From Tubulanus polymorphus (lineage: Eukaryota > Animalia > Nemertea), in contig NC_134031.1 of the NCBI RefSeq assembly GCF_964204645.1, positions 13,937,807 through 14,001,806 of the forward strand: a stretch of 64,000 bases of DNA. The letters run 5' to 3'. Both the position numbers and the translations under genes were made by a program. The notes beneath the pieces were generated by a model that worked only from the letters and a program-made list of their open reading frames with translations, did not search any database and was not told the DNA's origin. Positions 3,776 through 29,451 of the stretch are shown here, piece by piece; the first letter of the stretch is position 1; every line of letters begins with the position of its first letter.

Positions 3776-4295
3776 AATTATCCTGTTACAAATCAAAACA
3801 ATTCAATTCAATTCAATCAAATTATATTTGTAAATAAAATTCTTACGGAAAAAAAGAAATCAGGGATAACCCCCAAACCGAACGGACTCACCGTTACGAG
3901 AGTGAAAACTCCCTAATATCCTAATTCCCAGATTTTTACGGCGAAAAAATCCAACGCGTTCTACTGCGAGAACGCCAAGAAAAAAGATGGCGGATTTCGC
4001 CGGTGGCTAAATGCAATACCGCAGGGCCGGGTCGTATAGAAAAACCATTGGCGATAAATCCAAATTTAGAAAATATTGGCAAAAACCATAGGAAAGGGTA
4101 CAGTACTCGACGGAAATATGAAGAAATTAAGAATTCTTTTCAGGAACACTGGATTCAAAACCATAAAACATAGCTAGACAACGGACCATTATCAGGGTAT
4201 TCTCCATAAGTTAGGTGGGTTGTGGTCCCAGGCTACATATTGGTATCAAATATATCAAACAGATTCACATTTATCTTGATTATTTTGTCACTTAC

Positions 4296-4492
4296 TGTTG
4301 AACTTGATGGCTGCAGTTCGCACTGGTTAAATCGACGATAAGTTTCAGTTTACTCGACGCATGTTCCACATATTGCCGTTTGAATTGACGTTCTTTCGCC
4401 TTTTTTGTCCACGTCAGACGTTCATAAACATATAATAATCCGTATATCGTTCCACAGACAGCTATCACTCGCCACCCAGCTGCCTTCGCCAC
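4296..4492 (-). CDS. Mfn: Mitofusin exon (TM region, [23 protein letters not shown])
   Basis: Conserved mitofusin motifs; ttttag acceptor and CA|gtaag donor. Downstream HR2 exons are outside the window. Confidence 0.95.
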
Positions 4493-5355
4493 CTAAAACC
4501 AGCATTTAACAGTTAACAACTGACTTAGATGTACTTCAATATATTATCTTATAACTAAGATAAGTATGTTGAATTTCGTTGCCTTGTTCATTCAAATTAC
4601 CTTCTTTCACAATCAGTAACTGTCTTAATACATGTACTTCTGTTTGAAGTGATGAGTCTATGTCCATCTAACTTACAAATATTAACTATATTTTTCTAAT
4701 TGTCTTCGAGGTACTTTGTACCTTAGCATGTATTTTCTGTTTATATAATTATCTATAAACACTACATCACTTTTTCAATGATCCATCTTGAGTAGACCGA
4801 ACTTATTTTGGATTCTGTCTACCTATACATGAATACATGCAACGTATGATGCTAAATCCAGATTGATCTCTTTGATCCTAGATTATTGTAAATTACATTG
4901 TATACTTTGTACCGCATGTATTTACGCTTATAAAAAGCAATGAAGATGATTACCAGTATAGTGAACACTCCTTCAAGAATAACTCACTGAAGCCAATACT
5001 GCACCATTAAGGTAAGCCTGATACTGCTTGCCTCAGATGTAATTAATTGTTCCTATTAATTATGGACCAACTAATATTGGTGACTTGTCATAATGTTATT
5101 GTCCAGGGAGCAATTGTCCTGATAGGATGATGATAATGGTGTAGAGTGAGCAACTGGTCAGAGCAATAACACTGGGTTGCTTGATTTTAGGTTTGAACCC
5201 TACAAGGTAAGTATTGTTTTTATGTCCGAGCAAGATATTTCTTTCCCCTACCTTAATGACTCCAAGGAATCATGTACTATAACCCTGATATTAGTAGTTC
5301 ATTTCAGTTGGAGGCCTGGGGCAGGTGACAATACCAATATGTGAGTGCCATTGAT

Positions 5356-5482
5356 CAGGGGCCAGTAGCTCAAAAGTTGGTAAGAGTTGTGGGTAGTTGA
5401 AATAGTGACAATTGAAATTTCATCGTCACTATGGTATTTATCTGTCAGTTATCTACAACCAACTTCTGGGCAACTGGCCCAG
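5356..5482. mobile_element. Small MITE
   Basis: Imperfect TIRs ggggccagtagctcaaaagttgg / ccaacttctgggcaactggccc. Confidence 0.5.
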
Positions 5483-5579
5483 ATATCTACACTATTCAAG
5501 ATATTGGACCCTACTGAAAAATCAACATAATCATTTGTTTTAACGATCAGTTTACATGGTTTTATTTTTCTATATTTAC

Positions 5580-5732
5580 CAGACCAGACACAACCACCGC
5601 ACCAACTGTACTACGGGATGTTAATGAGGCGAATGTTGTCAGCAATGCCATCATTATTTCATTGTCTTGGTTGTCGATCGTTCGTGTTTCGTTGCTTGGC
5701 GTCTGAGGGGTCATTGGTACCGGACGAGGTAT
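5580..5732 (-). CDS. Mfn: Mitofusin exon (IPRPVPMTPQTP...SLTSRSTVGAVVVSGL)
   Basis: AG/GT boundaries, phase 0-0, SLTSR motif preceding the TM segment. Confidence 0.93.
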
Positions 5733-6117
5733 CTTAAAAAAAAAAAGAAACAAAATTCTTAATATGGACTTCCCTAAATTTACATCGTGGTGCACGTTTT
5801 ATACATCAAAATTAAATGGGTGAGTAACTGTTCGAGTCTAAAGCATTTAGAAGTTATCAAGATTTCAAGGCCTATTCGTTTAAGATTCGTTTCAAAACTT
5901 AGAATATGCGCATTTGCTGTGTTAACCACGGTGGCGCAAAGTTGCTAGAATCATTTGCAGCTTGTCATATACAAGTGTACGTAGCTAGCAGTAGTGGATA
6001 GATCAATACACTATACATGTGTAGCAACAAGTTAGTGTGAAGAATGCATGTGTGAAGCAAGAACATATGCCCTATTTAACAACTGCGTGTTCTTCTGAAT
6101 AGAAATGTAGATCCAAC

Positions 6118-6660
6118 AACAAAATAAAGGACCATGGGTCCAGTAGGATCAACTGAGTACATTTTAGTTTTGAGCAAAAAAATCGATTTGTTCTTGGATT
6201 TGCAATGACGTATAAACAGCTGATTAAGATGAAATAATCGTAGACTGTGTAGAGATCATGTTCAACTTAGATGATATACATGGTAATGGGTTTTCCCTAT
6301 GAGGCACAAGTACATAGTAGAACAGGTCTTGATAATGATGTCACTGGGAAAGCCCTTCTAGAGGGATTTCCAAGTGATTCCGTTCTGAAGGGCTTTCCCT
6401 GTGATGTCCGGAAACAAGGTCAAGGATTGATTCATAGAATGGGAAAAATTCAGTGAAGTTTTGCAAATTTTCTCCCAGCACTTCCAAATGGCTTAGAGCT
6501 GATGGACGAACCTTGCCATATCAATGCCAACACCTATGTCCTTCCTAATGACAAAATATCAGTTGTGCATATCCATTGGTTACAATTTGTGCCACCAAGA
6601 GCTAACAGAAAGTTACTCTCAGAACTATTCTATAAGGATCAACACAGTTGATCCTAACAA
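6118..6660 (+). mobile_element. Helentron/HINE-like non-autonomous element, family A copy 1
   Basis: Clear similarity to 11131-11671; subterminal inverted repeat taggatcaactg/cagttgatccta; 3' hairpin ggatcaac..gttgatcc. Confidence 0.65.
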
Positions 6661-7725
6661 GAGCCCCAAGGGGCACTATGGCCAGCCTGTCAGCTTTTCA
6701 TAAAAAGGCAAATGATGATGCATTCTGTGGGTTAAATTTGTCAAAATACACTCCCAGCTCAGAGTCAATACCTAATAATTTACACAATACAATCGTAGAA
6801 TACAAAAGTAGCACAGACAACAACTGGATCTGGTAGGAACAAATACCTCAGATAAATCTTTTCCATTGGTCTTGTTGATTTTAATGCGGAATAGAATTAA
6901 TTTTTTTGAAATTTCCTCAATAAAACAAAATTTAATTGGATTTGATGTTTAACCTTGTTCAATAAAGTAAAGTAGTTTGAGCACATGGCTAATTAGCATA
7001 TCAAGGTGATCTATCCGATTTAAGAAAAAGCTATTTTCCCCGGACTTTGCACAATGGTCAATGATATTTTCTGCAGTGCTAATAAAAGTATTCCTCCCAA
7101 AAACCAAATCAACTAAAGCTTTCACAGAAATCGATCTTGAAATACAATTTTAGATCTTAAATTAAACCCGGAAGTGAAACGGTAGACGATACCGCGGGTT
7201 CACGTGAACACCTGCTGATTTCAGCGGCTAAGCCAATCATAGAGGAGTCTTTGCTTTCTGATTGGCTTCGAGAATGGATAATGCTTTAATAAAGGATTTG
7301 TATGAATATATGCTCAGTTGCACAGTCGAAGAGCCTTTGCTCTGGAAATCATGTCATTTAAATTTGCTCCATTTGTATAGTTATAGGCTCAGCCTACGGC
7401 TGGCCTAAAAAATTGATCAACAGTTGAAGCCTCTAGGCTGCTAACGTTGTTTTTCAGGTCAGCACCCTGGTAGCCATATTTGAATTGAATCGACCCCATT
7501 TCAAATAGGGGTTTGGCCAAACTGATACCCTACTTGTGTTCCAAGTTTGGAATAAATCGCTCAACAATTGCAGCCCCTAGGCTGTTAACGTCGTTTTTCA
7601 TGTCGGCCTCCTGGTGGCCATAATTTGAATCGAACCGACCCAATGTTTAATACTTGCGGCGGCAGCAGACAGGGGTAAATCTATATGCCCCCTCTCAACT
7701 TAAGTTGAGCCGGGGGCATAAAAAT
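6656..7725 (+). mobile_element. Adjacent Helentron/HINE-like elements
   Basis: Starts aacaagagccccaagggg; subterminal ggccagcc/ggctggcc with a 3' hairpin ending ~7412; a second terminal hairpin tgccccc..gggggca followed by an A-run at ~7686-7725. Confidence 0.5.
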
Positions 7726-9072
7726 CTATGATAAAGTTTATTTCGTTCAAAATAAAAAGTGCCCAAGGGTCCCGAGGCCACAGCCTTATGAAATGCAGAG
7801 ATGAGATGATTTGACGAAGTTCAAAATATGTCAGTAAACGATATAGGGATGCGACTTGAAATGTACAAGTAGATTCGACCCGGTTAGAGGAATGATTCGT
7901 AGCAACTATATTGGCGAATCACGGAACCAATGAGAGCTGTGATACCGTACCAACCTATTAAGCGACAAATTCACAATAATCTAACACCACTTCCATTTAA
8001 AAACAACCGCAGCCGAGGGAAATCAGAGCTTCATGACGAAATGCAAGCAAAATGCTCATTCTAACCTAGCGCACAAGCCATTTCCAACAACAACGATACT
8101 TATATCTATATCTTAAACAATACTAGTTCAACTGTTTGGTGCTTTCTATATGCAAATAACTATTTCGATCTAACTGTAAAAATTAAAGGCTTTCAATGAC
8201 ATTATCTGCCAACCTCTCAAATTTAAAGGCTCCCACTGACTTTACCAGCACAAAACAAGAAATTAAGACCCCTATGGTGCCAACCCTTGGTGCGTGGTGC
8301 AAGGTGCCCGTTTACACCAAGTGATGTAGTCATCCGCATATTAATTCACCATTTAAATTAAATTTATCTGAACGAATTATCGATAAAATATTTAAAAATC
8401 TTTTTAATATTATTGTGATCAACTTCTATCACCATTCAACCCAATATAATGTGAAGTAATCTTGAATACAAAATTGCTGGATCTATTTTTGCAGCGTATT
8501 TAAGCCCATTAATCGGATCTTTCGTTAATTCAATGACTGTAAAAATGGTGTGCTTTGGTTCGCACTGAAAATACACGACACGATGCTGACATGCTCGTAA
8601 TAGCTCTCTCGTTCCTTGAGAGCTAATCAATTGATGTCGATTCTGGATTTGGTAAAGAGTCATTCATGTCTTGTTTATTATGTCAAATCTCATGATTGCC
8701 ATTTCGTAATACTGCCACATTCGTTATACCGCCAAAATTTTGACAGTCTTGGGGCAGGCGTTATAACAAGCTTTGACTGTAGTTTCATTTTCAATTACTT
8801 TTGAAATGAATTTTCAGGCTCCCTTTATCTAAAAACTACGACATGATCCACCATCGTCGTAGAAAAATGAGATTTAGCAGTCAATAGCGGCATACTCTAA
8901 ATCAATTACCTGAAACATATTTGATGCAATTATCACTAGGTGTAATCTAAGTCGAATACCTCAAGAACGGGATATACCGGCCTGGGTACCTTTTAGTTTT
9001 CACCAAAATGGGGATAAATGCTCATGATATCGGGCAAAACATTGACCTGGATAAATGAATGGGTCATCTTAC

Positions 9073-9293
9073 CACATCGCTATAACCCATCAGCACGGTG
9101 CGAGCTCCTTTTGGGCCAAGAAAACGATTGATCATCGACGTCACTCCGAGCGAGAATCGGAACTCAATATCCTCGCGAAAATCACCGCATAAATTGCGAC
9201 AATCGAGACGGTATGAAACTTCGAAATCACCCGCCGGCATCAGACCGGTGATCTGTTGCTTTTGTTCCTCAGGCAGCAGCGCGAGCAGACGTT
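9073..9293 (-). CDS. Mfn: Mitofusin exon (RLLALLP...YRLDCRNLCGDFREDIEFRFSLG)
   Basis: Conserved LC.DF.EDI.F.FSLG motif; phase 1-0; AG/GT boundaries. Confidence 0.95.
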
Positions 9294-9601
9294 CTGTCGG
9301 AAATGAAGAGAGAAAATAATAATCATTAGGCCTAAGCCATTCTTACTAGTCAATTACAAGAAGATACAGTCTAAAAACCCAATGAGCACATCAGCGCCTA
9401 AAAACCATCAACCGCAAAACAACAAATGAACTTTAGCAAAACTTTGTTCAGGCAACCACAGTTTTCATGAATTGTTTGTTATTTACAAGCGTTACCTCTA
9501 CTGTAAGGAAAAGCTCCAGTGGTTTCAATGTTTTTCAATGCTGTGCCTGCATTGGGCTGAAAGACTAGCATGTGGTTTTAGAGATCCACGAGTTGAATTA
9601 A

Positions 9602-10072
9602 CCCATTAGCACTCAGAAATTTCACTATTTAGTGTCAATTACTCCACTGAAAATTCAAGGGAACATCTAAATTTATCACGATACTGAATAGCTCATTTGC
9701 TATTTATTGTCATGCATTACAAGTTTGTGTTATTGTGTAGTAGATAGTGGAGGCTTTCATATGATATAATAAGATTTGATGAGGTGGGCTACCAGAAGCG
9801 TGTCCTTTTGGCCCCCGAAATTCATCCAAACTTACTTTAATTTAAAGTGAGCGCTCAGATCTTTCGTGTTCATACTCCTTATACTCGGGAATTTGAAATA
9901 GGAAGATGTCGATTTCTGTACAGTATTTTGAGGACTTGGGCGTCTAGATTATCATAAGCTATTGGGTTTGAATCCCACTATAACCGTTATTGTGCAGCAT
10001 ACGAAAAAAGTGTCAGGGCTGATTTAGGCAGCTTGAGGAGTAATAGGCAGTGCAAATACGGGTGCTAATGGT
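9602..10072. mobile_element. piggyBac-type MITE
   Basis: TTAA on both sides; TIR cccattagcac / gtgctaatgg. Confidence 0.6.
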
Positions 10073-10983
10073 TTAATCAGTATTCTTGCTCAAGAGTAAT
10101 AATGCTCTAGTAATAGATTTTACCAGAACTCGCACTAATAATTGAACTTATTGATTGCATCTTAGATATCAAATAATTTATCATGAGGGTTGATCATTGC
10201 ACAAAAAAACATTTAGAATCATTTCATAGATAAAGATTTCCATATTCTATAACTTAAGAAATACATGCAACACATAGCGCACCAGCAGTCCATGCAGATT
10301 GCAAGTCATTTTGATATATAAAACTAAACCACAGTCAATCAAAAAACTCAAAATAACCATTCATTAATTTAATCATTTTTAAATCAATTAAATGTTTTCT
10401 ACTAATTTTTTTATAGCCCACCGTGCTAAAAGACCACCACATTATTTCATATAACCTCAACAAGAAACCAAGTTCAGGGAATGAACAGCATGTCAGAAAG
10501 AGACATTTGAGTAAAAGCAATATATTTAGGACCCTCTTTTTGACATGCTTTATCAAATTAGTGGTGATGGTGGCTGATGCTTCATTTCAGCACTAACAAA
10601 TACACTCATCTAAGTCTATTATTTGGATGGTTATGAAATTTATTCATGTCATTTGGCACAATATAAATTAGCCTTCATCACTGGATTCTGAATTGTAAAA
10701 ACAAGTGTGCAGTAGACTATGCTGATTGCCTCCATTTTTCCATGTGCCTCGGAAAACAATGTTAAGAATTTTGTTGTTCCACTTTCATTGTTGATCATCT
10801 ATCCCTGCTCAGAGAATTTATTAGTCCCATGAGATCTAAGGCATGTAGAGTCTACAGGACATGCAACATATATGTAGTTTACTGTTATGGTGTCTAGAAA
10901 TGTGTTGTAACGACCGTCACACAGACACGCATGATGAATTCCCGAGACATTTTCAAATAATGAATTTTAACTTTCAATCTGAC

Positions 10984-11086
10984 CTGTCATATCTTGTTTG
11001 GTGTTTTGAATTGCTTGGATCAAAGCGGCTGAACATCGATGCTGTAAATTGCGGCCTAAACCCTGCTCTACATGAGCATGCAGTTC
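10984..11086 (-). CDS. Mfn: Mitofusin alternative exon B, 103 nt (ELHAHVEQGLGRNLQHRCSAALIQAIQNTKQDMT)
   Basis: ctatag acceptor and G|gtcag donor; phase 0-1; resembles the vertebrate MFN2 segment ELHRHIEEGLGRN..RCS (recalled, not searched). Confidence 0.93.
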
Positions 11087-11130
11087 CTATAGAAGTGTGT
11101 CGAAAAACAGAAATGAAAACAAAGAGCAAA

Positions 11131-11671
11131 AACAATAAAGGACCATGGGTCCAGTAGGATCAACTGAGCACATTTTAGTTTTGAGCACAACAATCGATTT
11201 GTTCTTGGATTTGCAATGATGTATAAACAGCTGATAAAGATGAAATCATGGTGCACTATGTAGCAAGCATGTTCAACTATGTTGATATACATGGTAATGG
11301 GTTTTCCCTATGAGTCACAAGTACATGGTAGAGTAAGTTCTTAATAATGTCACTGGGAAAGCCCTTCTAGAGGGATTTCCAAGTGATGCCCTATGTGAAG
11401 GGCTTTCCCTGCGTTGTCATGAAACTAGGTCAAGCATCCATTAGTAGAATGGGGGAAAATTCATTGAAATTATGCAAATTTTCTCTCAGCACCTCCAAAT
11501 GGCTTAGAGCTGATGGACAAAACTTGCCATATCAATTCCACCACCTATTTCCCTCCTAATGACAAAATATCAGCTGTTTATATTCAGTGGTTACAATTTG
11601 TGCCACCAAGAGCTAACAGAAAGTTACTCTCAGAACCATTCTATTAGGATCAACACAGTTGATCCTAACAA
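11131..11671 (+). mobile_element. Helentron/HINE-like element, family A copy 2
   Basis: Direct-orientation copy of 6118-6660 with the same termini. Confidence 0.65.
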
Positions 11672-11831
11672 CATTCACTCACAGTGGATGGCAAGAAAGA
11701 AAGCTGGCTTTGGGAGTCATTTTCAGAACAGTGTTCATCAATTTGAACGACATACTATTGTAGACTCATCTTATGCAGGTATCAATCTAAATGCCTGGCC
11801 ATATGCTTAACATTGCTCATCAATGCCGTAC

Positions 11832-12673
11832 CAGGGGCAGATTTATGGGTGGTTTAAGGGGTCCAGAACCCTGCCTTCTCATAGAGGTTACCCTATCTGC
11901 TATGTCTCCGTAAATTTGACATTAATCCTCTTGGAAATTGCATATTTTGAGAGTGGAACCTCGCTCATGGTTTCAACATGGCTGATTTAGGCCTACCATA
12001 TTTTCCGGCCAATAAGCCGATTTTCTAGCCTCAGATTTTTACCCAAAATATCGTGATCGGCTTATTGGGCGATACGATCTGACATAAAAAATCACTTCCC
12101 GATCTATGCCACTCTAATGCTCTCAATGATCGTCAAAATCAAGAAAAGTGGTCGATATTTATTTGAGGTCATTATTTACTACTAATTATAATCTATTTTG
12201 AACTATTTTATTTTTACTTTGATTGTTCCATCACCGCACAGCGGCAATGGTATACATTTATATAACGCGCGAGTTCATCATACTACCACGTGTCAGTTCA
12301 TACATTAGTATATATGCAAATCAGCAGTGAGCCGCGTACTGCATGTATGGCTGTGTGTATAGTAATCAGCTGAGTGAGTCTATATATAGCACAGTCACTC
12401 GGCGATGATAGTATACACAGCACTCTCACACATCGGCGGGCGCTACTGTCAGCCTCTTAAATCGTCAATTAAGACGAAATAATTGACAAATCAGTGAATT
12501 AAAATCTCTGATGAAGGGCCTCGGCTTATTGGGCGAAGCTTTATGAAATCCATGTATTTTAGGCTAAAAAACTGCCCTCGGCTTATTGGCCGGAAAATAC
12601 GGTATTTGCAAAATGCCCTTCCATTTATTCAAGACCCCCCCCCCCCCATCAATTTTTCCTAGATCCATCCCTG
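11832..12673. mobile_element. MITE (caggggcagatttatgg...cctagatccatccctg) hosting a nested MITE
   Basis: Imperfect terminal inverted repeats; no clear TSD. Confidence 0.5.
11996..12602. mobile_element. Tc1/mariner (pogo/Tigger-like) MITE
   Basis: TA flanks; TIR ccatattttccggccaataagccga / tcggcttattggccggaaaatacgg. Confidence 0.75.
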
Positions 12674-14389
12674 CACACTGACAGTGAACATCAAGACTTC
12701 ATCAAAAAGACAAGATGCGGTGTTCTCCATATGTTGGGTTTTAGAGGGCTACATTCATTCATTATCGGTGACATTGCGGCTGCTGAAGTAGTAAAGCTTT
12801 TGGTCACTCCAAAAATATTGGAAAATCAGCTGAAAATTACTAATTTTGCTGCAATCTGCTATCTTCTCACATTAACCCGCAAATTTACGAAGCAATAATC
12901 ACTGTAAGCATTGATAGAACATGGAGAGGGGAAGCAGATATTTGAACAGGGGTGGCTGATTTTCAGAGATGGATGTAAAAACGGCATTGAAGATTGAAGC
13001 CTGCATTTACTCGACCAGTGAACTTCTTTCAAATTACATGATAATTCAAGTTAGACGTTGAAAAGTTAAGTTGATATTTTATTGCAATGATTCTCAGTTT
13101 TGAGTTCAGAACCGATTCAAATTTTAAAGAGGAGTCTACTGGAAAAATAATATTTGTCAACAATTTTTCTCCTAGTTATATTACAAAAACTAGAGTTTTC
13201 TCTGAGATGACACTACCTGATGTCACACACTGAAGGTTACTGCATACAATAACCATCCACCTTAACAGCTCATCTGAATCTGCATTTATTACAGTTAACG
13301 CATGCGTTGTTTGCCTAGTGATAATTGTATGTAGATTCCAGATTATGACTCCAATTGTAGGAATGCAGCACCAGCAAAATTTTCACATAAATTCCTCCCA
13401 ATTCATTTAAAACTATTACATATTCATACATATTTATACAATACATGTACTACATTGTTTTCATACTAAACTCATGAAAAAATTTGTTTTCATATGTCAG
13501 ATGAATCTTTTTTCCTTCTCTTATGGACGGAGTTAACATGAAAAGCTTCCTTTCTCATTTGGTAAATCGATGTAGAGCCTAATAAAAAGTTGGGAGTGTT
13601 TACTGGAATTTTTAACTGCAATTATATGTCATGTTGTACCACATGCAATCACTGTACGCGGTTACTGTCTGTTTGCGATATCAGCTTAATACCACTTGAA
13701 AATTTCCAACCAAAACTCAGTACCAGAGTCAATAAACAACCCAACTGTAATATTTCAGTTACTTGATATGAAACTAGAAGTGAATCCAAGGGAAAATACC
13801 TAATAAGGGAGTGGAGCAATATTCTAGACTTCTCTACTAGCAAGTAAAAAAAGTAACTGGTCAGTGAAAAATATAGCTGAACAGAAGCGCGATACACAAA
13901 ACAATATATTTTCAAGAAACTGAGCTGGGAAACTATTTCTTCGTTGTACAATGAATGTCAAGAAGTAAACAATAACTTCGGTATCAAGTTTTTCATGCTC
14001 TTACCAGGGATTCAAACCTGATGTCATTTAGAGATATAATTATTGTATGGTAAAGCTTAGAATAAACTTAATATCGGAAATGAAGATAGTAAACGCGATT
14101 TATACGTGAACCTTACATCAGTAAGATGGTTTTCAAATGCATTCCAATCGTGTATACGATACGTTTCAATGGGTATGATAAACGTGAACGTAACATGTTC
14201 AACACGCAAATGATTCGCAATGTATGTTCATTCTAAGCTGCACCATGTGAAACAACCTAACCAAAGTGGACCCTGTATTGAAACCTATGTCTTAATTCAT
14301 TGTAGCTCATGCAGAAACCCAGCTCAGTAACGGAAAACGCAAGACAACACACGATCACAATCTGTTATATATTTGTCAGTAGTGTATAC

Positions 14390-14492
14390 CTTTAATGGCT
14401 GCCTCAGCTGATGACACCATTACCCGGACATGAGGAGAAACACGCGTTTGTAAGTTTTTACTCAACTCTTGTTCCAAGTAAACGTGTAACTC
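14390..14492 (-). CDS. Mfn: Mitofusin alternative exon A, 103 nt (ELHVYLEQELSKNLQTRVSPHVRVMVSSAEAAIK)
   Basis: tttgtcag acceptor and G|gtatac donor; same length and phase as exon B; shared ELH...EQ.L..NLQ.R.S pattern; no stop codon. Confidence 0.8.
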
Positions 14493-15267
14493 CTGACAAA
14501 TAATCACATATATTTAATTCGTTTGATACATAGCCTTTCAGCCACAGATTGCTGCTCTGCTGTATTCGGTACCAGCCAATTCAGCCAAATTTATCAGTTA
14601 AAATGTTTTAATTCCCTGATCCTCAGGTATCTGGTCAACTCGGGGACAAATTTAAGTCCCAATCCTACCGAATAAGGCAGAGTATTTATTACAATGCAAT
14701 AAGCCTTTGAATCCAAGCCTAATTGATTTCAAACAATGAGGAGCTGCGACACCAGCTATCCCACCAGATGGTGTGACGAGCACTCTTTTATGTTGTCAAA
14801 ATTATTTGAACTGAGCTATTATCGACTGCCAATAAATTATCGATTGCCACAGTTGCATTGGAGGTTCTCCACTCATGAAGCTATTTGCAACTCGTTAATT
14901 TAGATAGTGACATATTATATCACTGTTCTGTCATAAGACATGAGTTAACGCTATTTCCAACTCATTTGATAATGGATGCATAAACAAGAGTTAGTTTATC
15001 TTTTTATAAACTGTATGCCTTTGATTCAACATACACAGCCTGGCTAACCCACAGATCCTTTGTAGACACTTTCCCTGAAGTTCGGCGGACAGCTACACCT
15101 ACGGTTATGGATAAGATAATACGCCTAACCCTAAACCCAAGGGACGAAGCTCTGTTATTCTTCATTATTGGTAGACATCGTTTGTATTTGTATTCATTCA
15201 GTATCACTATTAGTGTTAAGCTTAAAATCAAACCTCATTTCATCATCAACATCATCTGTTAAACTAC

Positions 15268-15499
15268 CTTTTTGTATACATTAAGCATCATCTGGTCAGG
15301 ATGGAAGGGTCGATCAAATTCATCTACGAGGCCGGATAATCGACGTATCTCTTCGTTCAACGCGTTCGATACTTTCCTCTCGACATTCTCCACCATCGAT
15401 TTGATTTTGTCTTTGATTTCTTTCGTTAAAAGGCTCAGTTGTTGTTCCGTGTAGTCGAATTTGTCGGCTTTCTCTTGCCGTTGCTGGAGGTAATTTTTT
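15268..15499 (-). CDS. Mfn: Mitofusin exon, HR1 (VERKVSNALNEEIRRLS.LVDEF...FHP...L.VYK)
   Basis: Conserved motifs; AG/GT boundaries; phase 2-0. Confidence 0.95.
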
Positions 15500-15568
15500 C
15501 TACGAAAAAGCAAAATTTTAGTAATGACTTGCATGCATATGTTTTACATGCTTGCAGCAATTATCATT

Positions 15569-16120
15569 CAACGCCCCTAGGTGATTGTGTACAGTGACCT
15601 ATGACCTTGAAACTCAATATTGTAGAACATTTCATGGGCTACAACTTGCCAATTTGATTTAGTGGTTACAAAATATCCATAGGTGACAAAACCAATGGGA
15701 ACCCTGTTATTCTACTATTCAACACCCCTGGTGAACATATGCAGAAAACTAATAATGTTGAAATTAACCATATGTCATGAGCTAGAAAAGTTTAATGTCG
15801 AAATTCACCATATGTCATGAGCTAGAAAAGTTGCAATTTCATTGAGATGTAACAAAATTCATCTAAAAACCCACCACAATCATAGAACATATTAATTAAC
15901 AGGCCACAACTTGATCTGAGTGTGGTAACAAAATGTGAATAAGCACTAACATAAATTGCTACCATTTTCATTCACTTTTATATGCCCCCTGGTGACCAAT
16001 GATGTTCAAAATCAGCACAATCGTATGACGAACACACAGCGGGCTATATTTTTGCAATTCATTGTGGTGAAAAAATTATGCATAGGTACCGAAATAAACG
16101 GAAACACAATGTAATCGCTA
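15569..16120 (+). repeat. Degenerate ~155-bp tandem repeats, family B
   Basis: Recurrent cgccccctggtgacc...gaccttgaaactcacc...catgtcatgagctac units. Confidence 0.65.
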
Positions 16121-16147
16121 ATAACCAAGGTCAGGCCCTTTACTTAC

Positions 16148-16337
16148 CTAAGTTTTAAAGCCTTTTCATAGGTTTCTTCCATTACTGAGCGAAGATCTGA
16201 ACTGATCAACTTGCCACGATCGCTGTGTTTTTCAAACTTCGTTTTCACGGCAGTGTGCGAGATACATTCTTCGAATTGTCTCTCGAAATTAGCAAATTCG
16301 AATAAACGTATTTGGAAACCTTCGGCTAAGGCTCCCA
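16148..16337 (-). CDS. Mfn: Mitofusin exon ([30 protein letters not shown])
   Basis: Highly conserved motif; AG/GT boundaries; phase 1-2. Confidence 0.97.
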
Positions 16338-17047
16338 CTGAAAAAGAATGTGACAATCTTATCATCCCCAAAATGACCAAAATTATTTGGAATGCCCAAA
16401 TGGCCCAAATCAAGAATGAGATTTCTTATAAAAAATTGGCCCTCTATAAGTATAAATTTGCCATTGAAGTTAAAATTACGTGATGTTCATGTTTTTGACT
16501 ATTAACCCTGATGATATTATGTTTGACTATTAAATCCACAAGCGTTTTGTTTGGCAATAATTGATTATTGAACACCGGCACCTCCAACCTAACAAGTCTG
16601 GTGCCCAAGTTCAGATCTAAATTTCCCAATTTCAGACATTTCCATCGCCAGGTGATTATAGACATACAATAGTTCCCTGCTGTGGGCATAAAAAAAGACT
16701 AGTGATCCTTTGAATCACACATTACCCTTTGAATGTGAAGACTTGGACAATTTTCAAACAGAGAATAAATTCAATCTTGAAATGATGCAGACTGAACCTT
16801 ATCCTTAATTCTGCTAATTGTTACTACTCGTTTCCTTATAAATATCATCATAAGAGTTGCTATCCCCTATTAAATATGGGATTTCAAAGATTTCCATTTT
16901 CAATTATTTGACCCCATTTAGTTTCAAAAGATCCAAAATGTTGATATTTACCGGTAATTTGAACTACATTGCAATTTGTAATTAATGAAATTGTCGATTG
17001 GTTAGTAGACATACAGAAAATAATGGAAACATATGCTTCTCACTTAC

Positions 17048-17201
17048 AGGGCGTTGGCGTTCCTTGATCTTGATGTAATCTGGATATTAAAGTTTCTCTC
17101 GCCGAAACGAAGAAAACCCGATCAGCCGCATTCTTCCTGTCAATCACACCCAGTTCATCTGCTAAAAATGCCAAGTTACGTTCCTCATGTTGGGATTTCA
17201 C
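17048..17201 (-). CDS. Mfn: Mitofusin exon (VKSQHEERNLAFLADELG...DRVFFVSARE)
   Basis: Conserved FL..EL and R.FFVSA.E motifs; AG/GT boundaries. Confidence 0.95.
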
Positions 17202-18425
17202 CTATCAACAAATAAAGTTTAACTGTTTAAAACACTTTATTATCACAAATCCACCACAGATGATTCAAATTAATGGAAATTCCAATCATACAACAACCAC
17301 ATTTTATTTGGTCACATAAGTGGCGTTAAATTTTGACTGTGCACCGATTAGCCTAATATTTATAATATTCTCAGTCGTGAAAAAGAACCATATGGCACTG
17401 TGAGACTGCTCGCCATCAAATAATTCTGCCCCCTCATTCCATGTATTATTACATCTTAATCATCCAGACTTCACGGGGTGTTCAAAACCTGACTACAGAT
17501 AATTTGAATCGATGTTCTAACAAATGGACTTCAAACACTGGACATTACCAAAATCTTTGAACTTAGAAGCGCTTTCTGAGCAGTTAGAGCGATCTTGACC
17601 CATGAACCACTAACAATCATCACACTGTATATCTAATTCACCCATCAATAGATTGGAAGAACCCCCCAGCTCATCCACTCGACTAAACTTAAAATAGTAG
17701 GGCAGTTGAAAAATGATCACAAATCTATTTCACAGTTATTAACATCAACTCAGTTACTTAGCTACTGCTGGCTACATTCCAACAAACTACCAAGCATCTG
17801 ATTTATCAACTTACTACATGTATACACTGTTTAGAATTAAGTATCAACCTTTAATGATTCTGATAGATTAAGCATATACCAAAGGACAAAAATTGTTTGC
17901 AGGGTGATAAAGTTTAGCAGTGAAGCCTAAGACGGCAGGGAGATCAGCAAATACAGCCCGTTGAGAACCATGCATGTGGAATGAAAATTTCCGTTCAATG
18001 GGGACTCTATCATATGTACTTTTTGTGGTTCTGTCCATTCAATATAGAAACGATTTTATGAATTTTTTTATCATCAGCACTTCGATGTCAAGTGCATGTC
18101 GAGCTCATCGAAAAGCAAGACACAATGATGAGTTATGAGTATAACAGACACAGAACGCTTTTATGGTTTGCCCAGTTACCAAAATTGCACCAGACCAGGT
18201 CAGTGACACAATCAACCCCTACCCCCACGCTATAGTTAAACATCATTTTTGGACTAAATGTATTTGGAAAAGTGGTACTGAAATCCGTGGATCCGCTGAG
18301 AATTCTCATCCCTCCCATGAAAATCAAAAAACTAATCTGAGTAAGTGCAATACCATTGATATCTTCATAAATGTTGCCATAGCAGTAATGTAGATCACTC
18401 AAGTAGAATACGTAGCACCAGATTA

Positions 18426-18731
<306 letters not shown>

Positions 18732-19262
18732 TTATCTCCATTCATATAAGATGTGAATAAATGAAATTTGAACAATGTGATCAATATTTGAACCAGTATG
18801 ACAAAACATGTCGGGAACTACAACTTTGCAATCGATCATACATCATAAAAACCTGGTGATATTCCTCTGAAAAACCTTATTCCATCAATCAATGAAGACT
18901 GATGACACTAAGATGGTCACTGTGTGAAAATTGACTGATCGGAAAATCAGTCTGATATGTTTAAGATCCCTTCCCAAAGTATACCAATCACAAATCTAAA
19001 TGAAATATGGCACACCACTAAAGAGGTTTGTAGGGTGTGGTATTCTTCTTTCCACCCTCATCTCTCAAACTTTTAGGAGAGTTATAAAATTTTGGGTTCA
19101 TTTCAAAAGGTATTGTAACAACATATTGGACCATAAGGTCCATATAGTCAAGTTCAAACTTGACTAGTAGTGAGAAGAGGATGCATGTGACGAGATTTCA
19201 GTGTCAGTGAAAAGAAATTCAATTTTCTGATTATATCTTTTTTTTTCTACTACGCAGATCCA

Positions 19263-19376
19263 CAGGGGCCTGACACAGAAGGTTTTTGACCCCAGTTTCC
19301 TAGGTTAAGGTACTATATTTTTCATATAAGTATCTAGGATACTGGGGTCAAAAACTATTTTGTGTCAGGCCCCCTT
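19263..19376. mobile_element. Short fold-back MITE
   Basis: aggggcctgacaca..tttttgaccccagt / actggggtcaaaaa..tgtgtcaggcccct. Confidence 0.6.
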
Positions 19377-20068
19377 GACGCAGACCAGGTTATTTTTCGT
19401 CCGTCAAACCTCTGAGTCAGTCTGTTTTTACACAAGTTGGGACATTACTTATGTTGCATGCGTACACAGCACTATCATCTCTAGCCTACTACATGTACTA
19501 ACTAACTCAGGGATTCCCAAAGAGTAACACTTTTAACGGTGCAGTTTGCATGTGATGTAGGCACATCTGGTTACTTTCGTGAAGAAAATCCCTAATTCCC
19601 ACTCTCAAAAAATAAAATCTGGGCTATTGAGGAACCCAGCAGAGACAAATTTACCGGTCCGCTCCCAGTCAGTCTAATCCACTAACTGCGCAATTCTTTA
19701 TCGACAACTTTTGTATGTAACATTGCTGAAACAATTCGCTGAAAGGCAAGCCCTTCATGCACCGCAAAACTTCCCATAAATCATCAGGTTTTTGGAACAT
19801 AAATACAATGGGCTATGATAGTCATAACCAGGATCATGGATACAGGTAAATGACATGTTACAGGTATTTTTCTATCAGATTATCAGCTCCATATGATACT
19901 GTGTTTATGGGACTATATCCATGGCAGTAAATAGACTACGGCGGTTGTTCCGTGAACGGCAGGATTTTTACTAGCTATGATGCCTATATGGTCTTTGACC
20001 ATAATAAACATAACCCACAGCAGTCAAATTATTCATCACATAGATATATCGGGTTTCAAAGCGCTTAC

Positions 20069-20177
20069 CGTTTGCATCAGAGTTGATTCAGCATTAGCAA
20101 CCAAAACAAACACATCAGCATCGAGACAATGCTTATCAATCCAACTATCCAAATCCGGAGTAACGTCTATTCCTGGA
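20069..20177 (-). CDS. Mfn: Mitofusin exon ([37 protein letters not shown])
   Basis: G3 motif DSPG spans the splice junction; AG/GT boundaries. Confidence 0.97.
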
Positions 20178-20249
20178 CTGTAATGAAAGTTCAAGAGCCT
20201 CATTTATTGATGTTAATTATTGTTCGTTTTATTGTTTTCTTTAATTGAA

Positions 20250-21296
20250 GTAGGGGAGTGGTTTCAGATGCTAAACAATCTAATAATTTCAATATTCAAC
20301 GCCCCATCCAATGACTTGAAAAATTCCAATGACCTTGAAACTCACCAATCATAGAATATGTCAACAGCTACATTTTTGTAATTGATTGTGGTAACAAAAT
20401 ATGCCTAGTTACCAATATGACATGGAAATACTAAGTTATTCTACTATTCAATGCCCCCTGGTGACCATATGCGAAGCCCAATGACCTTGAAACTCACCAT
20501 AACCATAAAACATGTCATGAGCTACCGTTTTTTGCAATTGATCATGGCAACAAAATATGCCTAACTACCAATACTAGGGGTCCAGGGACACCATGCCCAC
20601 TTGGGAATTGGTTTCAAATGCTCAACAATCTAACAATTTCAATATTCAACGCCGTTCACAGTCATAGAATATGTCAGACGCTACGAATTTGTAATTGATT
20701 GTAATAACAAAATATGCCTCGTTATCAATTTGATATGGAAATACTAAATTATTCGACTACTCAACGCCCCGGGTGACCATATGCAAAACCCATTGACCTT
20801 GAAACTCACCACAATCATAGAACATGTCATGAACTACAACTTTTCAATTGATAATGGTAACAAAATATGCCTAGGAGCCAATTATTAAAATCTGATCGCA
20901 AAAATATCCGTTTCAAAAAGCCAATCAGAAAGCAAAAGGGAAAACTTGTGTTATTGTATTTATTGTTCCCCTGGTGGCCATATTCAAAAACCAAAGACCC
21001 TGAATCTCACCACAATTATAGACCATGTCATGAGCTAGAACTTTCCAATTCCAATTGATTGTGGTAACAAAATAAGCATAGGTACGAATATAATATGGAA
21101 ATACTAAGTTATTGAATTGTTCAACGCCCCAAGGTGGCCATTAACCAAACCAATGACCTTGAAACTCATCACAATCATTAAACATGTCCGCAGCTACAAT
21201 TTTTTAATTGATTGCGGTAACAAACTATGCCTAGTCTACCAATATAATATGGAAATACTAAGTTATTCTAGTTAGTCAACGCCCCCTGGTGACCAT
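20250..21296 (+). repeat. Family B ~155-bp tandem array with an element 5' end at ~20572
   Basis: About 6 diverged units; 5' motif actaggggtccagggacaccatgcccacttggga. Confidence 0.75.
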
Positions 21297-21373
21297 ACAG
21301 ATTTATCATAAACCACTGACCAGATTAATTTCATCAGAACCAAATGATTCGAATTAAGCGGGTTTAAACTTAC

Positions 21374-21495
21374 CTGTCAACTAATACAACATCGTCTTTC
21401 AATAAACTACATTTGTCTTTAGGCCAGATGATCCTTATCAAAGCACTGTTGTCTAATTTTACTGAACTCAGCGCGTGGGCTAGGTGTTTCACTGA
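21374..21495 (-). CDS. Mfn: Mitofusin exon (SVKHLAHAL...WPKDKCSLLKDDVVLVD)
   Basis: Conserved motifs; AG/GT boundaries; phase 0-2. Confidence 0.96.
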
Positions 21496-22014
21496 CTGAA
21501 ATAGACAAACAGAAGCAAGTCCAGTTTACGTAAATAACAAAATATCTGAAAACCAACTCTGAAAACCAAACTGTATGAAAGAGGTGCAGATTGATACCTG
21601 CATTATTTAATTATTCACTCACATCATGATGTCGTCAAGGACACAATGACTGTAGCAACAGTATAATATTCTCACTCCCAGTTGTGGGGACATACTGCAG
21701 AGATATATAGATATGGGAAAAACCGGGACGGCAGCATGCTCGCACAAAGGAGCGAGAACCTACCATGACTTCCCTGTTTTTTGTTTTTCAACTGATTCCC
21801 CTGGACCAAGAAACTCCACCCAACAGCACAGCTGGCCTAACCAACTCAACCAAAGCCAAACTGACTTCTTCCGTCCATCCGCAGCGCCACGTAGTGAGAA
21901 TAGTATAATATTTACAAACCCTGTTGGCCGACATACCGCAGAGATAAATAGATATGGGAAAAACCGGGGCCACCCAACCGACAGCCCAAAACACTCGGAA
22001 AAGGCATTGCAAAG

Positions 22015-22910
22015 AAAAATATAGCTGCAAAGCAGCGATAACGGGTTTTCTGCACAGTCTTAGAATCCTGTTCAACGGTGGATTTCGACAAAGCACAACG
22101 ATAAGGCACAACATCAGCCATTACTAACCAGGCTATTAGGAAACATCATTAATGATAGGTCACTCAAATTGCTCAGCAGTTATCTCTGAACGAAAACTTG
22201 AAGCCGAAATCAACGGAACGCCTCATCTTGGAATAAGTCAGTCTAACTAGTGGAGTCACGCAAGGTAGTATCCTAAGTCGTCTTCTGTTTAATGTCCTGA
22301 CAAATGACATACACAGTAATCTAAAATATACCAGACCGAGTAAATTTCGAAAACGACCTTAACACGCCGTTCGACCAAAAAACTTAATGTTCCGACAAGA
22401 AAAATCCTGTTCGAATGAAAACAATTCAGTTTGATCGAACAGTACACTTTTGTTTGAACCAAAACTTTTCTTCATTCTGACAAAAAAATGTGTTCCAATT
22501 AAAAGTTATGTTATTTTTGAAATGAAAAACTTTTTGTCCCGGCAAAAAATTTATTGAGCGAAAACAATTTTTTTCGAACGAATGTTTGAATGAAAACAAT
22601 TCTGTTCGATTGAACGAAATACTTAATACTTTTGGTTCGGAGAAAAAACTTTTTACAATATACTTGTTCGAACGAAAAAATTAATAATCTGACAAGAAAA
22701 TTCTGTGCAAATTAAAACGATTCTGTTTGATCGAACGATTGTTCGAACGAAAAAACCTTTCGTTTGGACAAAAAAAGTTTGTTCAACTTTGTTCTAACGA
22801 TTGTTTCAAACTGAACAATCGAACAGAATATTATTGGTTCGAACGAAATCAAATTTGTTCCGACGAAAGAATTTTCAAGCGAAAGGTCTTTTGAACGAAA
22901 GAAAAGATAT
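22015..22910 (+). repeat. Left arm of a long inverted repeat: decayed CR1/L2-like RT fragment plus ttcgaacgaaa-type repeats
   Basis: Decayed VDFDKA and SGVTQGSIL motifs; reverse complement is similar to 27215-28566. Confidence 0.6.
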
Positions 22911-22934
22911 TTCTGGGGCTCCGCAGTAACTTAA

Positions 22935-23210
22935 AGCCGGACGTAGGTCGGCCTTGCGACGCGATCATTGCATTGCATCGCAAGTTTCGGTGCAAGTCGG
23001 TTGCGATACGATTGTCACCATCTGTTCGCGACGTATCTGCCAGTCGCAAGAGCGCGTAGGTCGGTTGTGACAGTCGTGTCACGTCGCAGAAAGTAGAACA
23101 CGTGCGACTCCTTGTGACTGGCGTTGCTGAAAGTCGCAACCCATCGCAAGGGAGCGTAGGTCGATGAGTCGTTGCGACACAATCGTCGCAAAGCCGACCT
23201 ACGTCCGGCT
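22935..23210. mobile_element. PIF/Harbinger-type MITE
   Basis: TAA TSD; TIR agccggacgtaggtcggc / gccgacctacgtccggct. Confidence 0.8.
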
Positions 23211-26200
23211 TAAGTCATTAGCAATTAATGAAATACCAGCTTCATTTATGATGAAAAACTCAAATGAAAAGTCTGGCTTATAAAGCTGTCTGCTCAGACG
23301 AAATTTTCCAAAAAAAATCTTCATTTTTGTCGATAAAATTGATAATTGTGATTGATCGTTGCAAGTCAGAACCAGTTAATCACTAATTAACATGCATTTT
23401 AATAAATCTGATTCCTCCTTTACAGTGAACTTAGCTTTAACCTAGTAGTGGTTACTAGTAGGCCTATGTATATGCGTAGGCCTAACATCCGGGCAGATTG
23501 GTCGTAGGCCCATTGAATAACAACCCTCCTAAATATCGTAAATTTTGTTTTGAAGTTCAATCCAATGAGTCCGTTAATAAAAGCAACAATTATATTCTGT
23601 TTGTTTGAGTCAGTGAAGGTCATAGCGGTAGGCCTAAAGCCTTAAGGTTGCGTAAAACTCGATAAAATCTTCAAGCGACACAGCGAACCATCTCCTTTCC
23701 CCCACAGCGAACGCTTACTCCAAATGTCAAGTGTGAGTCCAGCATACGGATAGGCATGTGTTATACACTTGTATCTAGTAAATACCTTGTGCATTTGACA
23801 ATGATCGGTATGTACTGTAGGAAATATAGAGTATTGATGGTATTGATATAGAGGTTGAAGCCCGCGGCCGAATAAAGCAATATATTCTTTTATTTTGATA
23901 CCTCGTCGACATAACAGCTTTTCTCCGCTATATCTCTTCGGCGTGTTTAGTTTAGGCCTACGACTCCCCGGTACACTAAAGATTCATCTTAGTAAATACA
24001 CGGTTAATTTGGTAAAGAAAAATAGGTATTGTTAAACTAACTCCTTGAAACCCGCAGCCAAATCACTGGTAGTAATAAATTAATTTGTACTCGATTTGAT
24101 TCTCATGATGAGGAGAAACTCGCAGCTGATCCCCGGAATGACGATGTAGCGACACACGTCGATTCATCGATGTTTACAGCTCGACAGTGCTTTGAAAATC
24201 TAAAGTAGTAAATTTCCAGTGTATCGGTAATATGATTTAATGAGGAAAATGGGCTATTGTTGAAATTACTGTTTGAAGACCGCGGCTGAATGTGAAGTTT
24301 GCGGCAATAAATTAGTTCATTTATACTTGAATTGATAATCGAAGTGACAATCGGCCTGCGGGTTGATTTCGGGATGACGACTCGAAAAACATGTCGCCCC
24401 ATTGAATGGGGCTAAATTTTCGATGTTTACAGCCCGACAGTGCTTTTGTAACGATGATTCGTGAAAAAACACGCGGAGTATTTGTAGATCTCAGTGAGCT
24501 GAACGATATCATACGGATTGTATCGACAACAGCGGCAAGGTAACAAAGCCTTAGTTCTTTTAGTGAAAATAGTGTGACATAAAATAATAATAATAAGAAA
24601 CACGCGAATCTCAATAGGGTTTTCTGTGATGTAACAGAAAACCCTAATAAAAAACCCAAAACTCAAACCCAAACCCAAACCATAAAGGGGAGTAAAACAA
24701 AAGATCTACACAGCAAGTGAAGTAATAGTGAGAACATATGTAAAAGACCTATGGGACAGAGCTTCCCTAATCGCTCAAAGATAAGATACAACGTACAATG
24801 GTTTATAAGCTTCATCGGCCGCAGCAACATGACCAGAAGGAAAAGCAACCCATCAAAAGTTACCCAACGGTAATCACAATCGTCGCCGAGAAAATAGAAT
24901 CCACACCCTCAAAACAGATCGTACCGAACTCTCTGACCGATAAATCTCACAATAGTAGGCCGAAGTATACCGAAATACACTTATAGTAAGGAGAACCAAC
25001 TACCCTGACCTTTTCTCTGCCCTAAAAATTCATAATTCATTATTACTCGTCGTTTATATGTTTATTTATTTTTTTTATAAACGAGTTTCCATTCTTTTCT
25101 CACACACAGGACACACAGTTCTGCACACAGCCACAGTGTAGTCCACGCACAGTAGACTCCGGGGCACACAGCCCTCCAGCCCGCACACAGCAGGCAAACA
25201 GGACATATAGTCCTGCGAGGCACACAGCCTCTAAACCACACGCAGTAGACTCCACGCGCAGTACACGCGCACAGTAGGGAACAAATACATAAGACTCCCA
25301 CACACAGTGGAATAACCCGGACGACAGACTCCAAACAGCACAAAGGAAGGCACACAGTTCACGTACGTAAGTACACGCTCACAGAACAAAGCCAAACTGT
25401 GAACCACCACAACCGTATAAGCACGTCCGGCAGTGAGGAAAACCAAAGCCAAACTGACTTCTTCCGTCTGTCCGCAGCGCCAAGCAGTGAGAAGAGTATC
25501 CTTATTTTTAACAGGAAGAGAAAGCAGTTGATCAAATGAATTGCCCATGGGCAAAGTGGTTTACCTTGAAAACTGTAGTTTGTTCGCTTATATTATCGGT
25601 CGGCAACCGTAACAAATGTACATTTCTTCGGGCTAAGACATTGACAAGACAAATCCAAGCCAGGACACTAATGACATTGCTTAAGGTACTAGTTCGGGTA
25701 CTTGATTAGATAGCCTACTTCGTAACCATCCGAATTACAAGCGAACCATGTTCGATAAGTCAAATGAAATGATTGTCATTTTGTTTTTTCAATTGAGGCT
25801 TTCCCATAATTTTGATATTTGTTTTCCCATTACATCATATGGCCCCGAAATTCCCTGTATATCCCAAGAAAAAAATTTCTTAAAATGAACTCGATGTTGG
25901 TCAATGTGAACTTCTTTTGCAACTGCTTGAATAACATCTTGGAAAGATTGATGATGAGAATTTTAAGACACAACAAAAGTTTATAATTTATATATCCTGA
26001 GAAAGGATGACATAACACAACCTAAGAGAAAAAGCTTACGATTCGTCACCAAATCATACATCGTTTAGGCCGAGAACTAATGAAACAAATAATCACATAT
26101 AAAACGTACTTTGATTTTACATAATCGGCTCAATGCCAACACCATTATAGCTAACAAAGGTAAACCAAAAAGACCGTAATCACATACATAATGGGCCCTG

Positions 26201-26401
26201 CTTATCAATATTCTATATCTGCATATCATTTACAAGAGAGGTTTGGAAAATCCAGGAAAACTGAAGAAATCGATGTCGAAATTTCGCAATTTTCATCCAG
26301 ATTCCATTGGTTGGAACAAAACAAAATCTAGGGGCCCAGGGAGACCATGCCAACTTGGGAAGTAGTTTCAAATGTTTCAATGCCCCCTGATGACCTTATT
26401 A

Positions 26402-27213
26402 AACTAGGGGTCCAGGGACACCACGCCTTCTTGGGAAGTGGTTTCAAATGCTCAACAATCTAACAAAATATGCCTAGGTACCAATCTAATAAGGAAATAC
26501 TAAGTTATTCTTCTATTCAACGCCCCCTGGTGACCATATAGAATAACTAATGTCCTCAAAACTCACCACAATCATAGACAATATCATGAGCTACAACTTT
26601 GCAATTGATTGTGGTAACAAAATATGCTTAGGTATCAATACAATGTGGAAAAACTTTTTCCCACCTACGAATGAGTACTGATGATACCAAGATGGCTGCC
26701 AATTGCATCATAATTGGCCGATCAAAAATACCTGGCTCAGGTATAAAACAGCCCTTTCCAAAAAATACCTTTCACAAATTGCAATGAGAAATGGCGAACC
26801 AGTAGGAAGCTACGGGACTCAGAATTTGGGCCAAAATTGACATTTTTGGGCACTAAAAAGGTCATAGGATGACCATCTTGAGTCCGATCGACCCAATTTT
26901 TCTTAAGGTGATGAACCCTTGGGGGATTCAAATATATACGAAAGATCAAGGTAATTGATTTGAGCGTCTTCAAAATTTCCCTCAAAAAGTTCAAAAATGT
27001 GTAAAAAGTGCTGATTTTGGCGAACAACAATGGCTGCCAGTCGGCCATCTTGATTCTGACAGGGCCAGTAGATACATGTGTAACCCAAATATCAAGACAT
27101 TACATTGAAGCATCTTCAAAACTTCCCAAAATAACTGTATTCCGTCTACGGCGGACGGACGGACGAAAAGTGAACGCAATAGCCCGCTGGGACTAGTCCC
27201 AAGTGGGCTAAAA
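26402..27213 (+). mobile_element. Complete family B Helentron/HINE-like element
   Basis: 5' motif, central ~155-bp repeat, (GGAC)n microsatellite, and 3' hairpin agcccgctgggactagtcccaagtgggct followed by an A-run. Confidence 0.7.
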
Positions 27214-27214
27214 G

Positions 27215-28566: not shown

Positions 28567-28811
28567 TTTAAGTTTGCTCTGTACAACTGTACTTCTCTGC
28601 ATAATTCCACAGTATTCTGATAGAGGAGAGACCTAGGCTCTCTTCAACTAAAAAGAATTGTAAGTTAAAATTTTACGTTTCTAAGCTGTCAAATGTCCCT
28701 GAAAACTTAAGTTGGTGTTACAGCAAACAGACAATTAATTTGGGATGGCCCCATGGGAAATGATCACATGTGACATGGATGGTATGTAATTACCAGTCAA
28801 AATCTACTAAC

Positions 28812-28974
28812 CTGTAAACTTTGATGTTCAGAGGAATCTTCGGTAAGAAGGTATGCCTCCGTACAGTTCCCTCCCTCGACTTGCAGAAAACAATTTGTCG
28901 TATGTCCAATACCGGTTGGTAATATCTTATTCTTCAACATAGCGTTTATCACAGTACTTTTACCATTTGAAGTT
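28812..28974 (-). CDS. Mfn: Mitofusin exon, G1/G2 ([14 protein letters not shown]...[11 protein letters not shown])
   Basis: P-loop GRTSNGKS and GHTT motif; AG/GT boundaries. Confidence 0.98.
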
Positions 28975-29321
28975 CTGTAAATACACAGAAATTGGTCAAC
29001 AAATGATGAATTCCACAGAGCTGCCAACCAAGATTACATGTTTAGCTGAACACATGTCCAAGTTTCAAAAGTCTTCCAGTAGTCTAACATCACCTTATTT
29101 CAAGAATATTGAATTACCATTGGATTTATCACCTACAAAAGGTGGCCGATCTATGCTTTAAATCTTTTTACCCATAATTTCTCAATGCTTTAACATGAAT
29201 ATTTCAACAATAGTCTTTCTGATCGCCAAAAAAGGTATTTTAATCAGAAACATAACAATTGTAAGACATATTGCTAACAAAACTCTATAAATAATGAAGT
29301 TTTTCATGCAATTTATCATAC

Positions 29322-29451
29322 CTTCCAAAGAACACAACTTTCATGTGATCTCTAGCTAAAACTTCCCAAATACCGGAGACTTTATCCTGGTGTTTCTGCA
29401 CTAATTCTACATGTTCTTTAACTGCAAGATTTTCTTCTTCACTTTCAACAT
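29322..29451 (-). CDS. Mfn: Mitofusin exon (...KVSGIWEVLARDHMKVVFFG)
   Basis: Conserved RDHMKV.FFGR motif; phase 1-2. Confidence 0.96.

Follow-up and report, generated by a model that had tools for sequence, protein, structure and literature searches.

Two homologous exons of identical length in the mitofusin gene of the nemertean Tubulanus polymorphus raise the question of whether this gene encodes two alternative proteins, one per exon, and how old the choice between them may be. The locus lies in a 64,000-nt stretch of contig NC_134031.1 (positions 13,937,807 to 14,001,806), hereafter the window, in which all positions are counted from the first base unless another locus is named. A first-pass annotation, made from the letters alone, had read the two exons, here called A and B, as mutually exclusive alternatives that alter the helix following HR1, and had suggested that they form an old, selected switch. 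The features concerned are the following:

4295..29930, minus strand: the part of the mitofusin gene that lies in the window (tblastn of P0001/P0151; Pfam Fzo_mitofusin and Dynamin_N)
15268..15499, minus strand: constitutive upstream exon, encoding the end of the HR1 helix; donor at 15268, phase 0
14390..14492, minus strand: exon A, the divergent alternative, 103 nt; residues 477-510 of RefSeq isoform X2 (P0001)
10984..11086, minus strand: exon B, the canonical form, 103 nt; residues 477-510 of RefSeq isoform X1 (P0151)
9073..9293, minus strand: constitutive downstream exon; acceptor at 9293, takes the G carried over from A or B

The start codon is at 29930. Comparison of P0001 and P0151 with the window (tblastn) placed 13 coding exons, which account for residues 1-701; the remaining 67 residues (702-768) are encoded by one or more exons past the first base of the window. 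The full-length proteins used here are all database entries, and a search with the downstream exon led to a 768-residue protein identical to the window. Pfam detected the Dynamin_N (1.5e-28) and Fzo_mitofusin (8.5e-66) domains, both above the curated cut-offs. MFN2 (6jfk) was matched by phmmer with an E value of 1.6e-155 and was, together with MFN1 (5gom), the top Foldseek match (E 3e-36 for 6jfk), while the BDLP structures 2j69 and 2j68 matched over the full length in Foldseek. Domain, sequence and fold matches thus confirm that the gene belongs to the mitofusin/Fzo family of dynamin-like GTPases. When the 268-Mb genome was searched, the downstream exon matched one locus and exon A matched nothing beyond itself. 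Since each of these exons matches a single locus, mitofusin is encoded by only one gene in T. polymorphus, at the sensitivity of the exon searches used.

Two other features of the window may be recorded here. Beyond mitofusin exon 4492-4295 there is a GC-rich block (1-3583, minus strand; 52-55% GC, against about 37% around it) with two long ORFs. One, of 598 residues (1794-1, minus strand), contains a reverse transcriptase domain (RVT_1, 6.9e-24); the other, of 687 residues (3583-1523, minus strand), gave no Pfam match. The block looks like a retroelement, presumably located in the next intron. Between about 36300 and 58000, units of 1803 bases are repeated in tandem at an even GC content of about 44%, and identical open frames recur there (for example, 39886/38083 and 39102/37299).

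Exons A and B are separated by 3303 nt. Each begins after an AG and ends before a GT, has an open frame and runs from phase 0 to phase 1, and the positions and peptides originally given for them match the sequence. The last G of either exon begins a codon that is completed by the first two bases of the 9293-9073 exon. The two peptides are identical at 11 of 34 residues. Exon B carries a GLGRNLQ motif; exon A is without GLG and has LS at that position. Across the mitofusins of many animals, both peptides nevertheless align to a single common segment of 34 residues, and because of this common match we regard their homology, as judged by alignment, as not being due to chance. We then used a local script, which carried one or two bases over the junction, to follow the reading frame. 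When A and B were both read, a stop codon appeared 9 codons into the next exon, and when neither was read, a stop appeared after 18 codons, in keeping with the earlier statement that inclusion of both exons, or of neither, shifts the frame. After either stop come two or more exon junctions within the mapped part of the gene, and more would be expected from the exon or exons that encode residues 702-768 outside the window. An early stop located ahead of later exon junctions is the condition for nonsense-mediated decay. The length of 103 nt therefore dictates that exactly one of the two exons is present in a productive mRNA.

To what part of the protein does the choice apply? Solved mitofusin structures span residues 38-412 and 690-764 only, so that the A/B exon falls within the structurally unsolved helical region. 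In AlphaFold2 models of the two isoforms, each computed on a 74-sequence alignment, a single long helix runs from residue 468 to residue 514, with residues 477-510 at its core and block-mean pLDDT values of about 82-91 in both cases. This helix comes after a gap that follows a very long helix (residues 343-458) containing HR1, and its earlier description as the helix after HR1 thus fits the models of both isoforms. By analogy with BDLP, the region may belong to a second helix bundle near the membrane. The first third of the exon is common to A and B and includes an ELH..E motif, a Leu and an invariant Asn, and the rest differs. On these models, the swap is likely to alter the packing or a partner surface of the predicted helix, leaving the fold unchanged.

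Both products are on record. The protein cluster has two members, both from T. polymorphus, named "mitofusin-2-like isoform X2" (XP_074655522.1; P0001), which contains exon A, and "isoform X1" (XP_074655517.1 and three more accessions; P0151), which contains exon B; they differ at residues 480-510 only. Whether the pair had already been annotated, a point on which the first-pass annotation had offered no view, is thus answered: both forms are present in the automatic RefSeq annotation, with four transcripts for X1 and one for X2. Mutually exclusive use of A and B is supported by these records and by the frame arithmetic, as well as by a B-spliced contig and by A-only transcripts of relatives, both described below.

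We compared the contigs of four sequencing runs with positions 9551-15550 of the window (6,000 letters). Run X3 behaves as RNA. In this run, a 972-nt contig with a depth of 130 contains the upstream exon and continues at 11086 directly after 15268, the 4181 bases left out being bounded by GT..AG; the upstream exon is therefore spliced straight to B, bypassing A. Intron contigs of X3 have depths of about 8-25, and exon A is found within an unspliced 670-nt contig (14046-14715) with a depth of 12.8, that is, at intron level. Exon B is the major form in the X3 sample. Of the junctions expected from the original reading, 15268|11086 was thus recovered, but none that involves exon A was found in this species among the contigs of the four runs over 9551-15550. 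Contigs drop rare variants, and one whole-sample run cannot show that A is not used. Run X5, the only one guessed to be RNA from its record, had no match on the stretch. Short database proteins spanning the A junctions (query P0001:455-535) were likewise not found, in a search whose length limits make a blank weakly informative.

A 206-nt contig present in X2 and X4 was considered as a possible A junction. It fits 14312-14494 and continues with 23 unlike letters; once the AG that also closes the upstream exon is allowed for, the fit breaks off at the exon A acceptor. It was not counted because X2 and X4 look like DNA and because this stretch, rich in repeats, has very many loose ends. As a separate observation, repeats in the introns around B (9551-10150 and 11134-12750) reach contig depths of hundreds to thousands in X2-X4, unique sequence having a depth of about 10-30; they are abundant dispersed repeats of the genome.

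The splice signals differ between the two exons. The pyrimidine tract at the B acceptor is richer than that at the A acceptor in five of six species; in Tubulanus, the pyrimidine fractions are 0.70 for B and 0.50 for A, and the longest runs are 6 and 3, respectively. The pyrimidine tracts, the X3 contig and the RefSeq transcripts, four against one, together point to B as the default and to A as a regulated choice. We also noted a predicted stem of 14 nt around exon A:

14489..14502, minus strand: upstream arm of the stem, spanning the exon A acceptor AG and the end of the pyrimidine tract
14370..14383, minus strand: downstream arm of the stem, in the intron just past the exon A donor

Of the 14 positions, 13 are paired, and the stem is present in both the minimum-energy and the centroid folds (fold z -2.1, duplex z -2.8). 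Such a stem could hide the acceptor of exon A and loop the exon out. Among the six species compared, however, Lineus, Owenia and Patella gave nothing comparable, and the signal was weak in Lingula (z -0.9) and marginal in Capitella; as the stem is not conserved, we place little weight on it.

We then asked how far the pair extends beyond Tubulanus. Genomic loci of relatives were examined, and in five species exon A is present with an intact frame and AG/GT ends. In the nemertean Lineus (L003), the brachiopod Lingula (L004), the annelids Capitella (L005) and Owenia (L006) and the limpet Patella (L009; the locus was obtained via the isoform X1 record), an A-type exon lies 5' of its B-type partner. 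At all five loci both exons are 103 nt long, are flanked by AG and GT and run from phase 0 to phase 1, with 204-2341 nt between them. The complete pair is thus found in five further species and, in all, in four phyla (nemerteans, annelids, a brachiopod and molluscs). An echinoderm (L007) and a spider (L008) have a single 103-nt exon each, and at a beetle locus (L012) the segment is present once. No second copy was detected at these three loci at E < 0.05, a level at which A and B cross-match easily. The suggestion of an old, selected switch accordingly gains from the finding of the same A-then-B pair, 103 nt each, in four phyla, and from its absence from three outgroup loci.

Protein records point in the same direction. 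Among 120 homologues, a second isoform that differs at exactly the A/B segment occurs in many lophotrochozoans, and isoforms of the A type are found in many molluscs. The X2 isoforms of Lineus, Pecten, Mizuhopecten, Littorina, Crassostrea, Saccostrea and Ostrea are distinct at this exon, further second isoforms are found in Biomphalaria, Pomacea, Physella, Lymnaea and Ruditapes, and the X1/X2 pairs of Patella, Aplysia and Saccostrea differ at the A/B exon. Moreover, L010 and L011 are transcript contigs of 3.4 kb, of which one comes from a Logan run and the other from a JGI sample; each has an uninterrupted full-length ORF with the A type only, from which it follows that A-only mRNAs are made in relatives. 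The models of Lamellibrachia (P0155), Plakobranchus (P0220) and Elysia crispata (P0236) hold both segments, A first, with intron-derived filler in two of the three, and are probably mis-joined versions of the same exon pair. Conversely, intact A exons at L004:5983-6085 (Lingula), L005:2272-2374 (Capitella) and L006:5726-5828 (Owenia) lie outside the protein records used and seem to be unannotated alternative exons. In practical terms, several public gene models either run the two exons together (Lamellibrachia, Plakobranchus, Elysia) or lack A (the records used for Lingula, Capitella and Owenia).

Between phyla, A-type exons are on average identical at 10.9 of 34 residues and B-type exons at 19.7 of 34, and by this measure A has changed at about double the rate of B. 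Between close genera, A is almost constant: 32 of 34 residues are identical between Pecten and Mizuhopecten, and 33 of 34 between two Patella species. Fast change between phyla with near-constancy over short distances is the pattern of a constrained exon with a lineage-dependent optimum. The second Gly of GLG is always Gly in B, and its place is taken by Ser or Cys in A (Lys in oysters).

Is exon A still functional in Tubulanus itself? It could be a silent or near-silent relic, with RefSeq isoform X2 a product of homology-driven annotation and B alone making protein. The only RNA-like run, with B spliced at a depth of 130 and A at intron background, agrees with this idea, as do the weak pyrimidine tract of A and the character of the exon, which is the most divergent of the A-types: it has a long branch (0.73) in a tree built on the 34-residue segments, has lost a Cys that is nearly universal elsewhere and has acquired a Pro within the helix. 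Yet Tubulanus and Lineus split very long ago by established nemertean phylogeny, and over that time the exon has kept its open frame, its exact length of 103 nt and its AG/GT ends. It still groups with Lineus A (support 96/85) and is still predicted to form a confident helix; the transcript evidence, for its part, comes from contigs of a single run, subject to the limit given above. We consider it unlikely that A is a relic.

A second alternative would make A mainly a poison exon, with the frameshifted A-plus-B mRNA being degraded so as to tune mitofusin dosage. The early stop that follows inclusion of both exons, and an A acceptor weaker than that of B in five of the six species, would suit such a role. 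A poison exon, however, needs no kept frame, whereas A retains an open frame, the invariant Asn and ELH..E across four phyla, varies little between close genera and occurs alone in full-length coding transcripts of relatives; this alternative is very improbable.

The A exons themselves fall into two groups. Although the alignment offers few columns (34), Tubulanus A, Lineus A and the annelid A exons form a clade with support 100/97, apart from Tubulanus B, and the A exons of molluscs and Lingula form a second cluster; a single A clade was not rejected (AU p 0.215). Every A-type exon lies 5' of B, has the same length and phase and lacks the second Gly of GLG. On account of these common features, one duplication, before the split of nemerteans, annelids, brachiopods and molluscs, is the most likely origin. 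By established dating, this split took place more than half a billion years ago. That the exon was instead duplicated independently in each phylum, the Tubulanus pair being lineage-specific, is the least probable of the alternatives. The two A clusters, unjoined in the free tree, speak for it; against it stand the A-first order, length, phase and Gly loss common to all A-types, and the grouping of Tubulanus A with its annelid and Lineus counterparts and not with its own B.

We conclude that A and B are very probably an ancient tandem-duplicated, mutually exclusive pair in the sole mitofusin gene of Tubulanus. Each mitofusin mRNA would take A or B and never both, and an mRNA with both exons or with neither would meet an early stop and presumably be removed by nonsense-mediated decay. 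Exon B, which evolves slowly and whose pyrimidine tract is the stronger, would be the default and the ancestral form; A would be the faster-evolving, regulated alternative, which probably needs activation or release from a block. The swap would replace the core of helix 468-514 in the membrane-proximal helical region after HR1, such that the same fold with a changed surface may give two mitofusins, possibly with different functions, from one gene. The duplication itself would predate the divergence of the four phyla.

Tandem-duplicated mutually exclusive exons have been surveyed before (PMC5740500, PMC9741552, PMC9013439), examples being exons 5a/5b of human SCN alpha genes and exons 7a/7b of ATE1. 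As in these cases, the Tubulanus exons are adjacent, homologous and equal in length and phase, and one of them would be used per mRNA; the event is likewise old and conserved, and a single structural element distinguishes the isoforms. The difference is that the gene is a mitofusin and that the event is limited, as sampled, to lophotrochozoan phyla. Nor was a conserved competing RNA structure of the docking/selector type found for the mitofusin pair in the six species. The anatomy is that of a textbook tandem-duplicated pair, and the novelty lies in the gene and in how widely the event occurs. Full-text literature searches returned no paper describing the exon pair in a mitofusin; the pair, although already in the automatic annotation, is apparently undescribed in the literature.

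MFN1 and MFN2 in vertebrates, and Marf and Fzo in Drosophila, are duplicates of the mitofusin gene, and the comparison of the A/B choice with MFN1/MFN2 made in the first-pass annotation is an analogy. As with those duplicates, Tubulanus has two mitofusin variants per organism, but they are two isoforms of one gene, and only 34 residues are exchanged, the GTPase, HR1, the membrane anchor and HR2 being common to both. Alternative splicing of a mitofusin gene also gives rise to the human MFN2 variants ERMIN2 and ERMIT2, to which the summary of Naon et al. in PMC10757993 ascribes distinct roles. The two cases are alike in that splicing of a mitofusin gene yields variant products. ERMIN2 and ERMIT2 are reportedly truncating, exon-skipping variants, whereas the Tubulanus swap is a like-for-like replacement by a duplicated exon.

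Tentatively, and with well under the confidence that we attach to the exon pair itself, the A/B swap might be a lophotrochozoan-wide route to two functionally distinct mitofusins, with B serving housekeeping fusion and A being tissue- or stage-specific. If this were the case, the A form could serve in tissues such as muscle or the germ line; its helix-bundle contacts would be altered, and in molluscs it would carry extra cysteines. The swap would then be a splicing counterpart of the MFN1/MFN2 and Marf/Fzo duplications, kept since before the phyla diverged.

Mitofusins are central to mitochondrial fusion, and no experimental structure covers the helices that lie between HR1 and the membrane anchor. 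A natural, conserved swap of one helix marks the residues that selection lets differ between two working forms, and production of isoform A or B in cells that lack mitofusin offers a simple experimental handle on them. A large group of animals with a single mitofusin gene would still make two variants, which bears on how often splicing and gene duplication stand in for each other.
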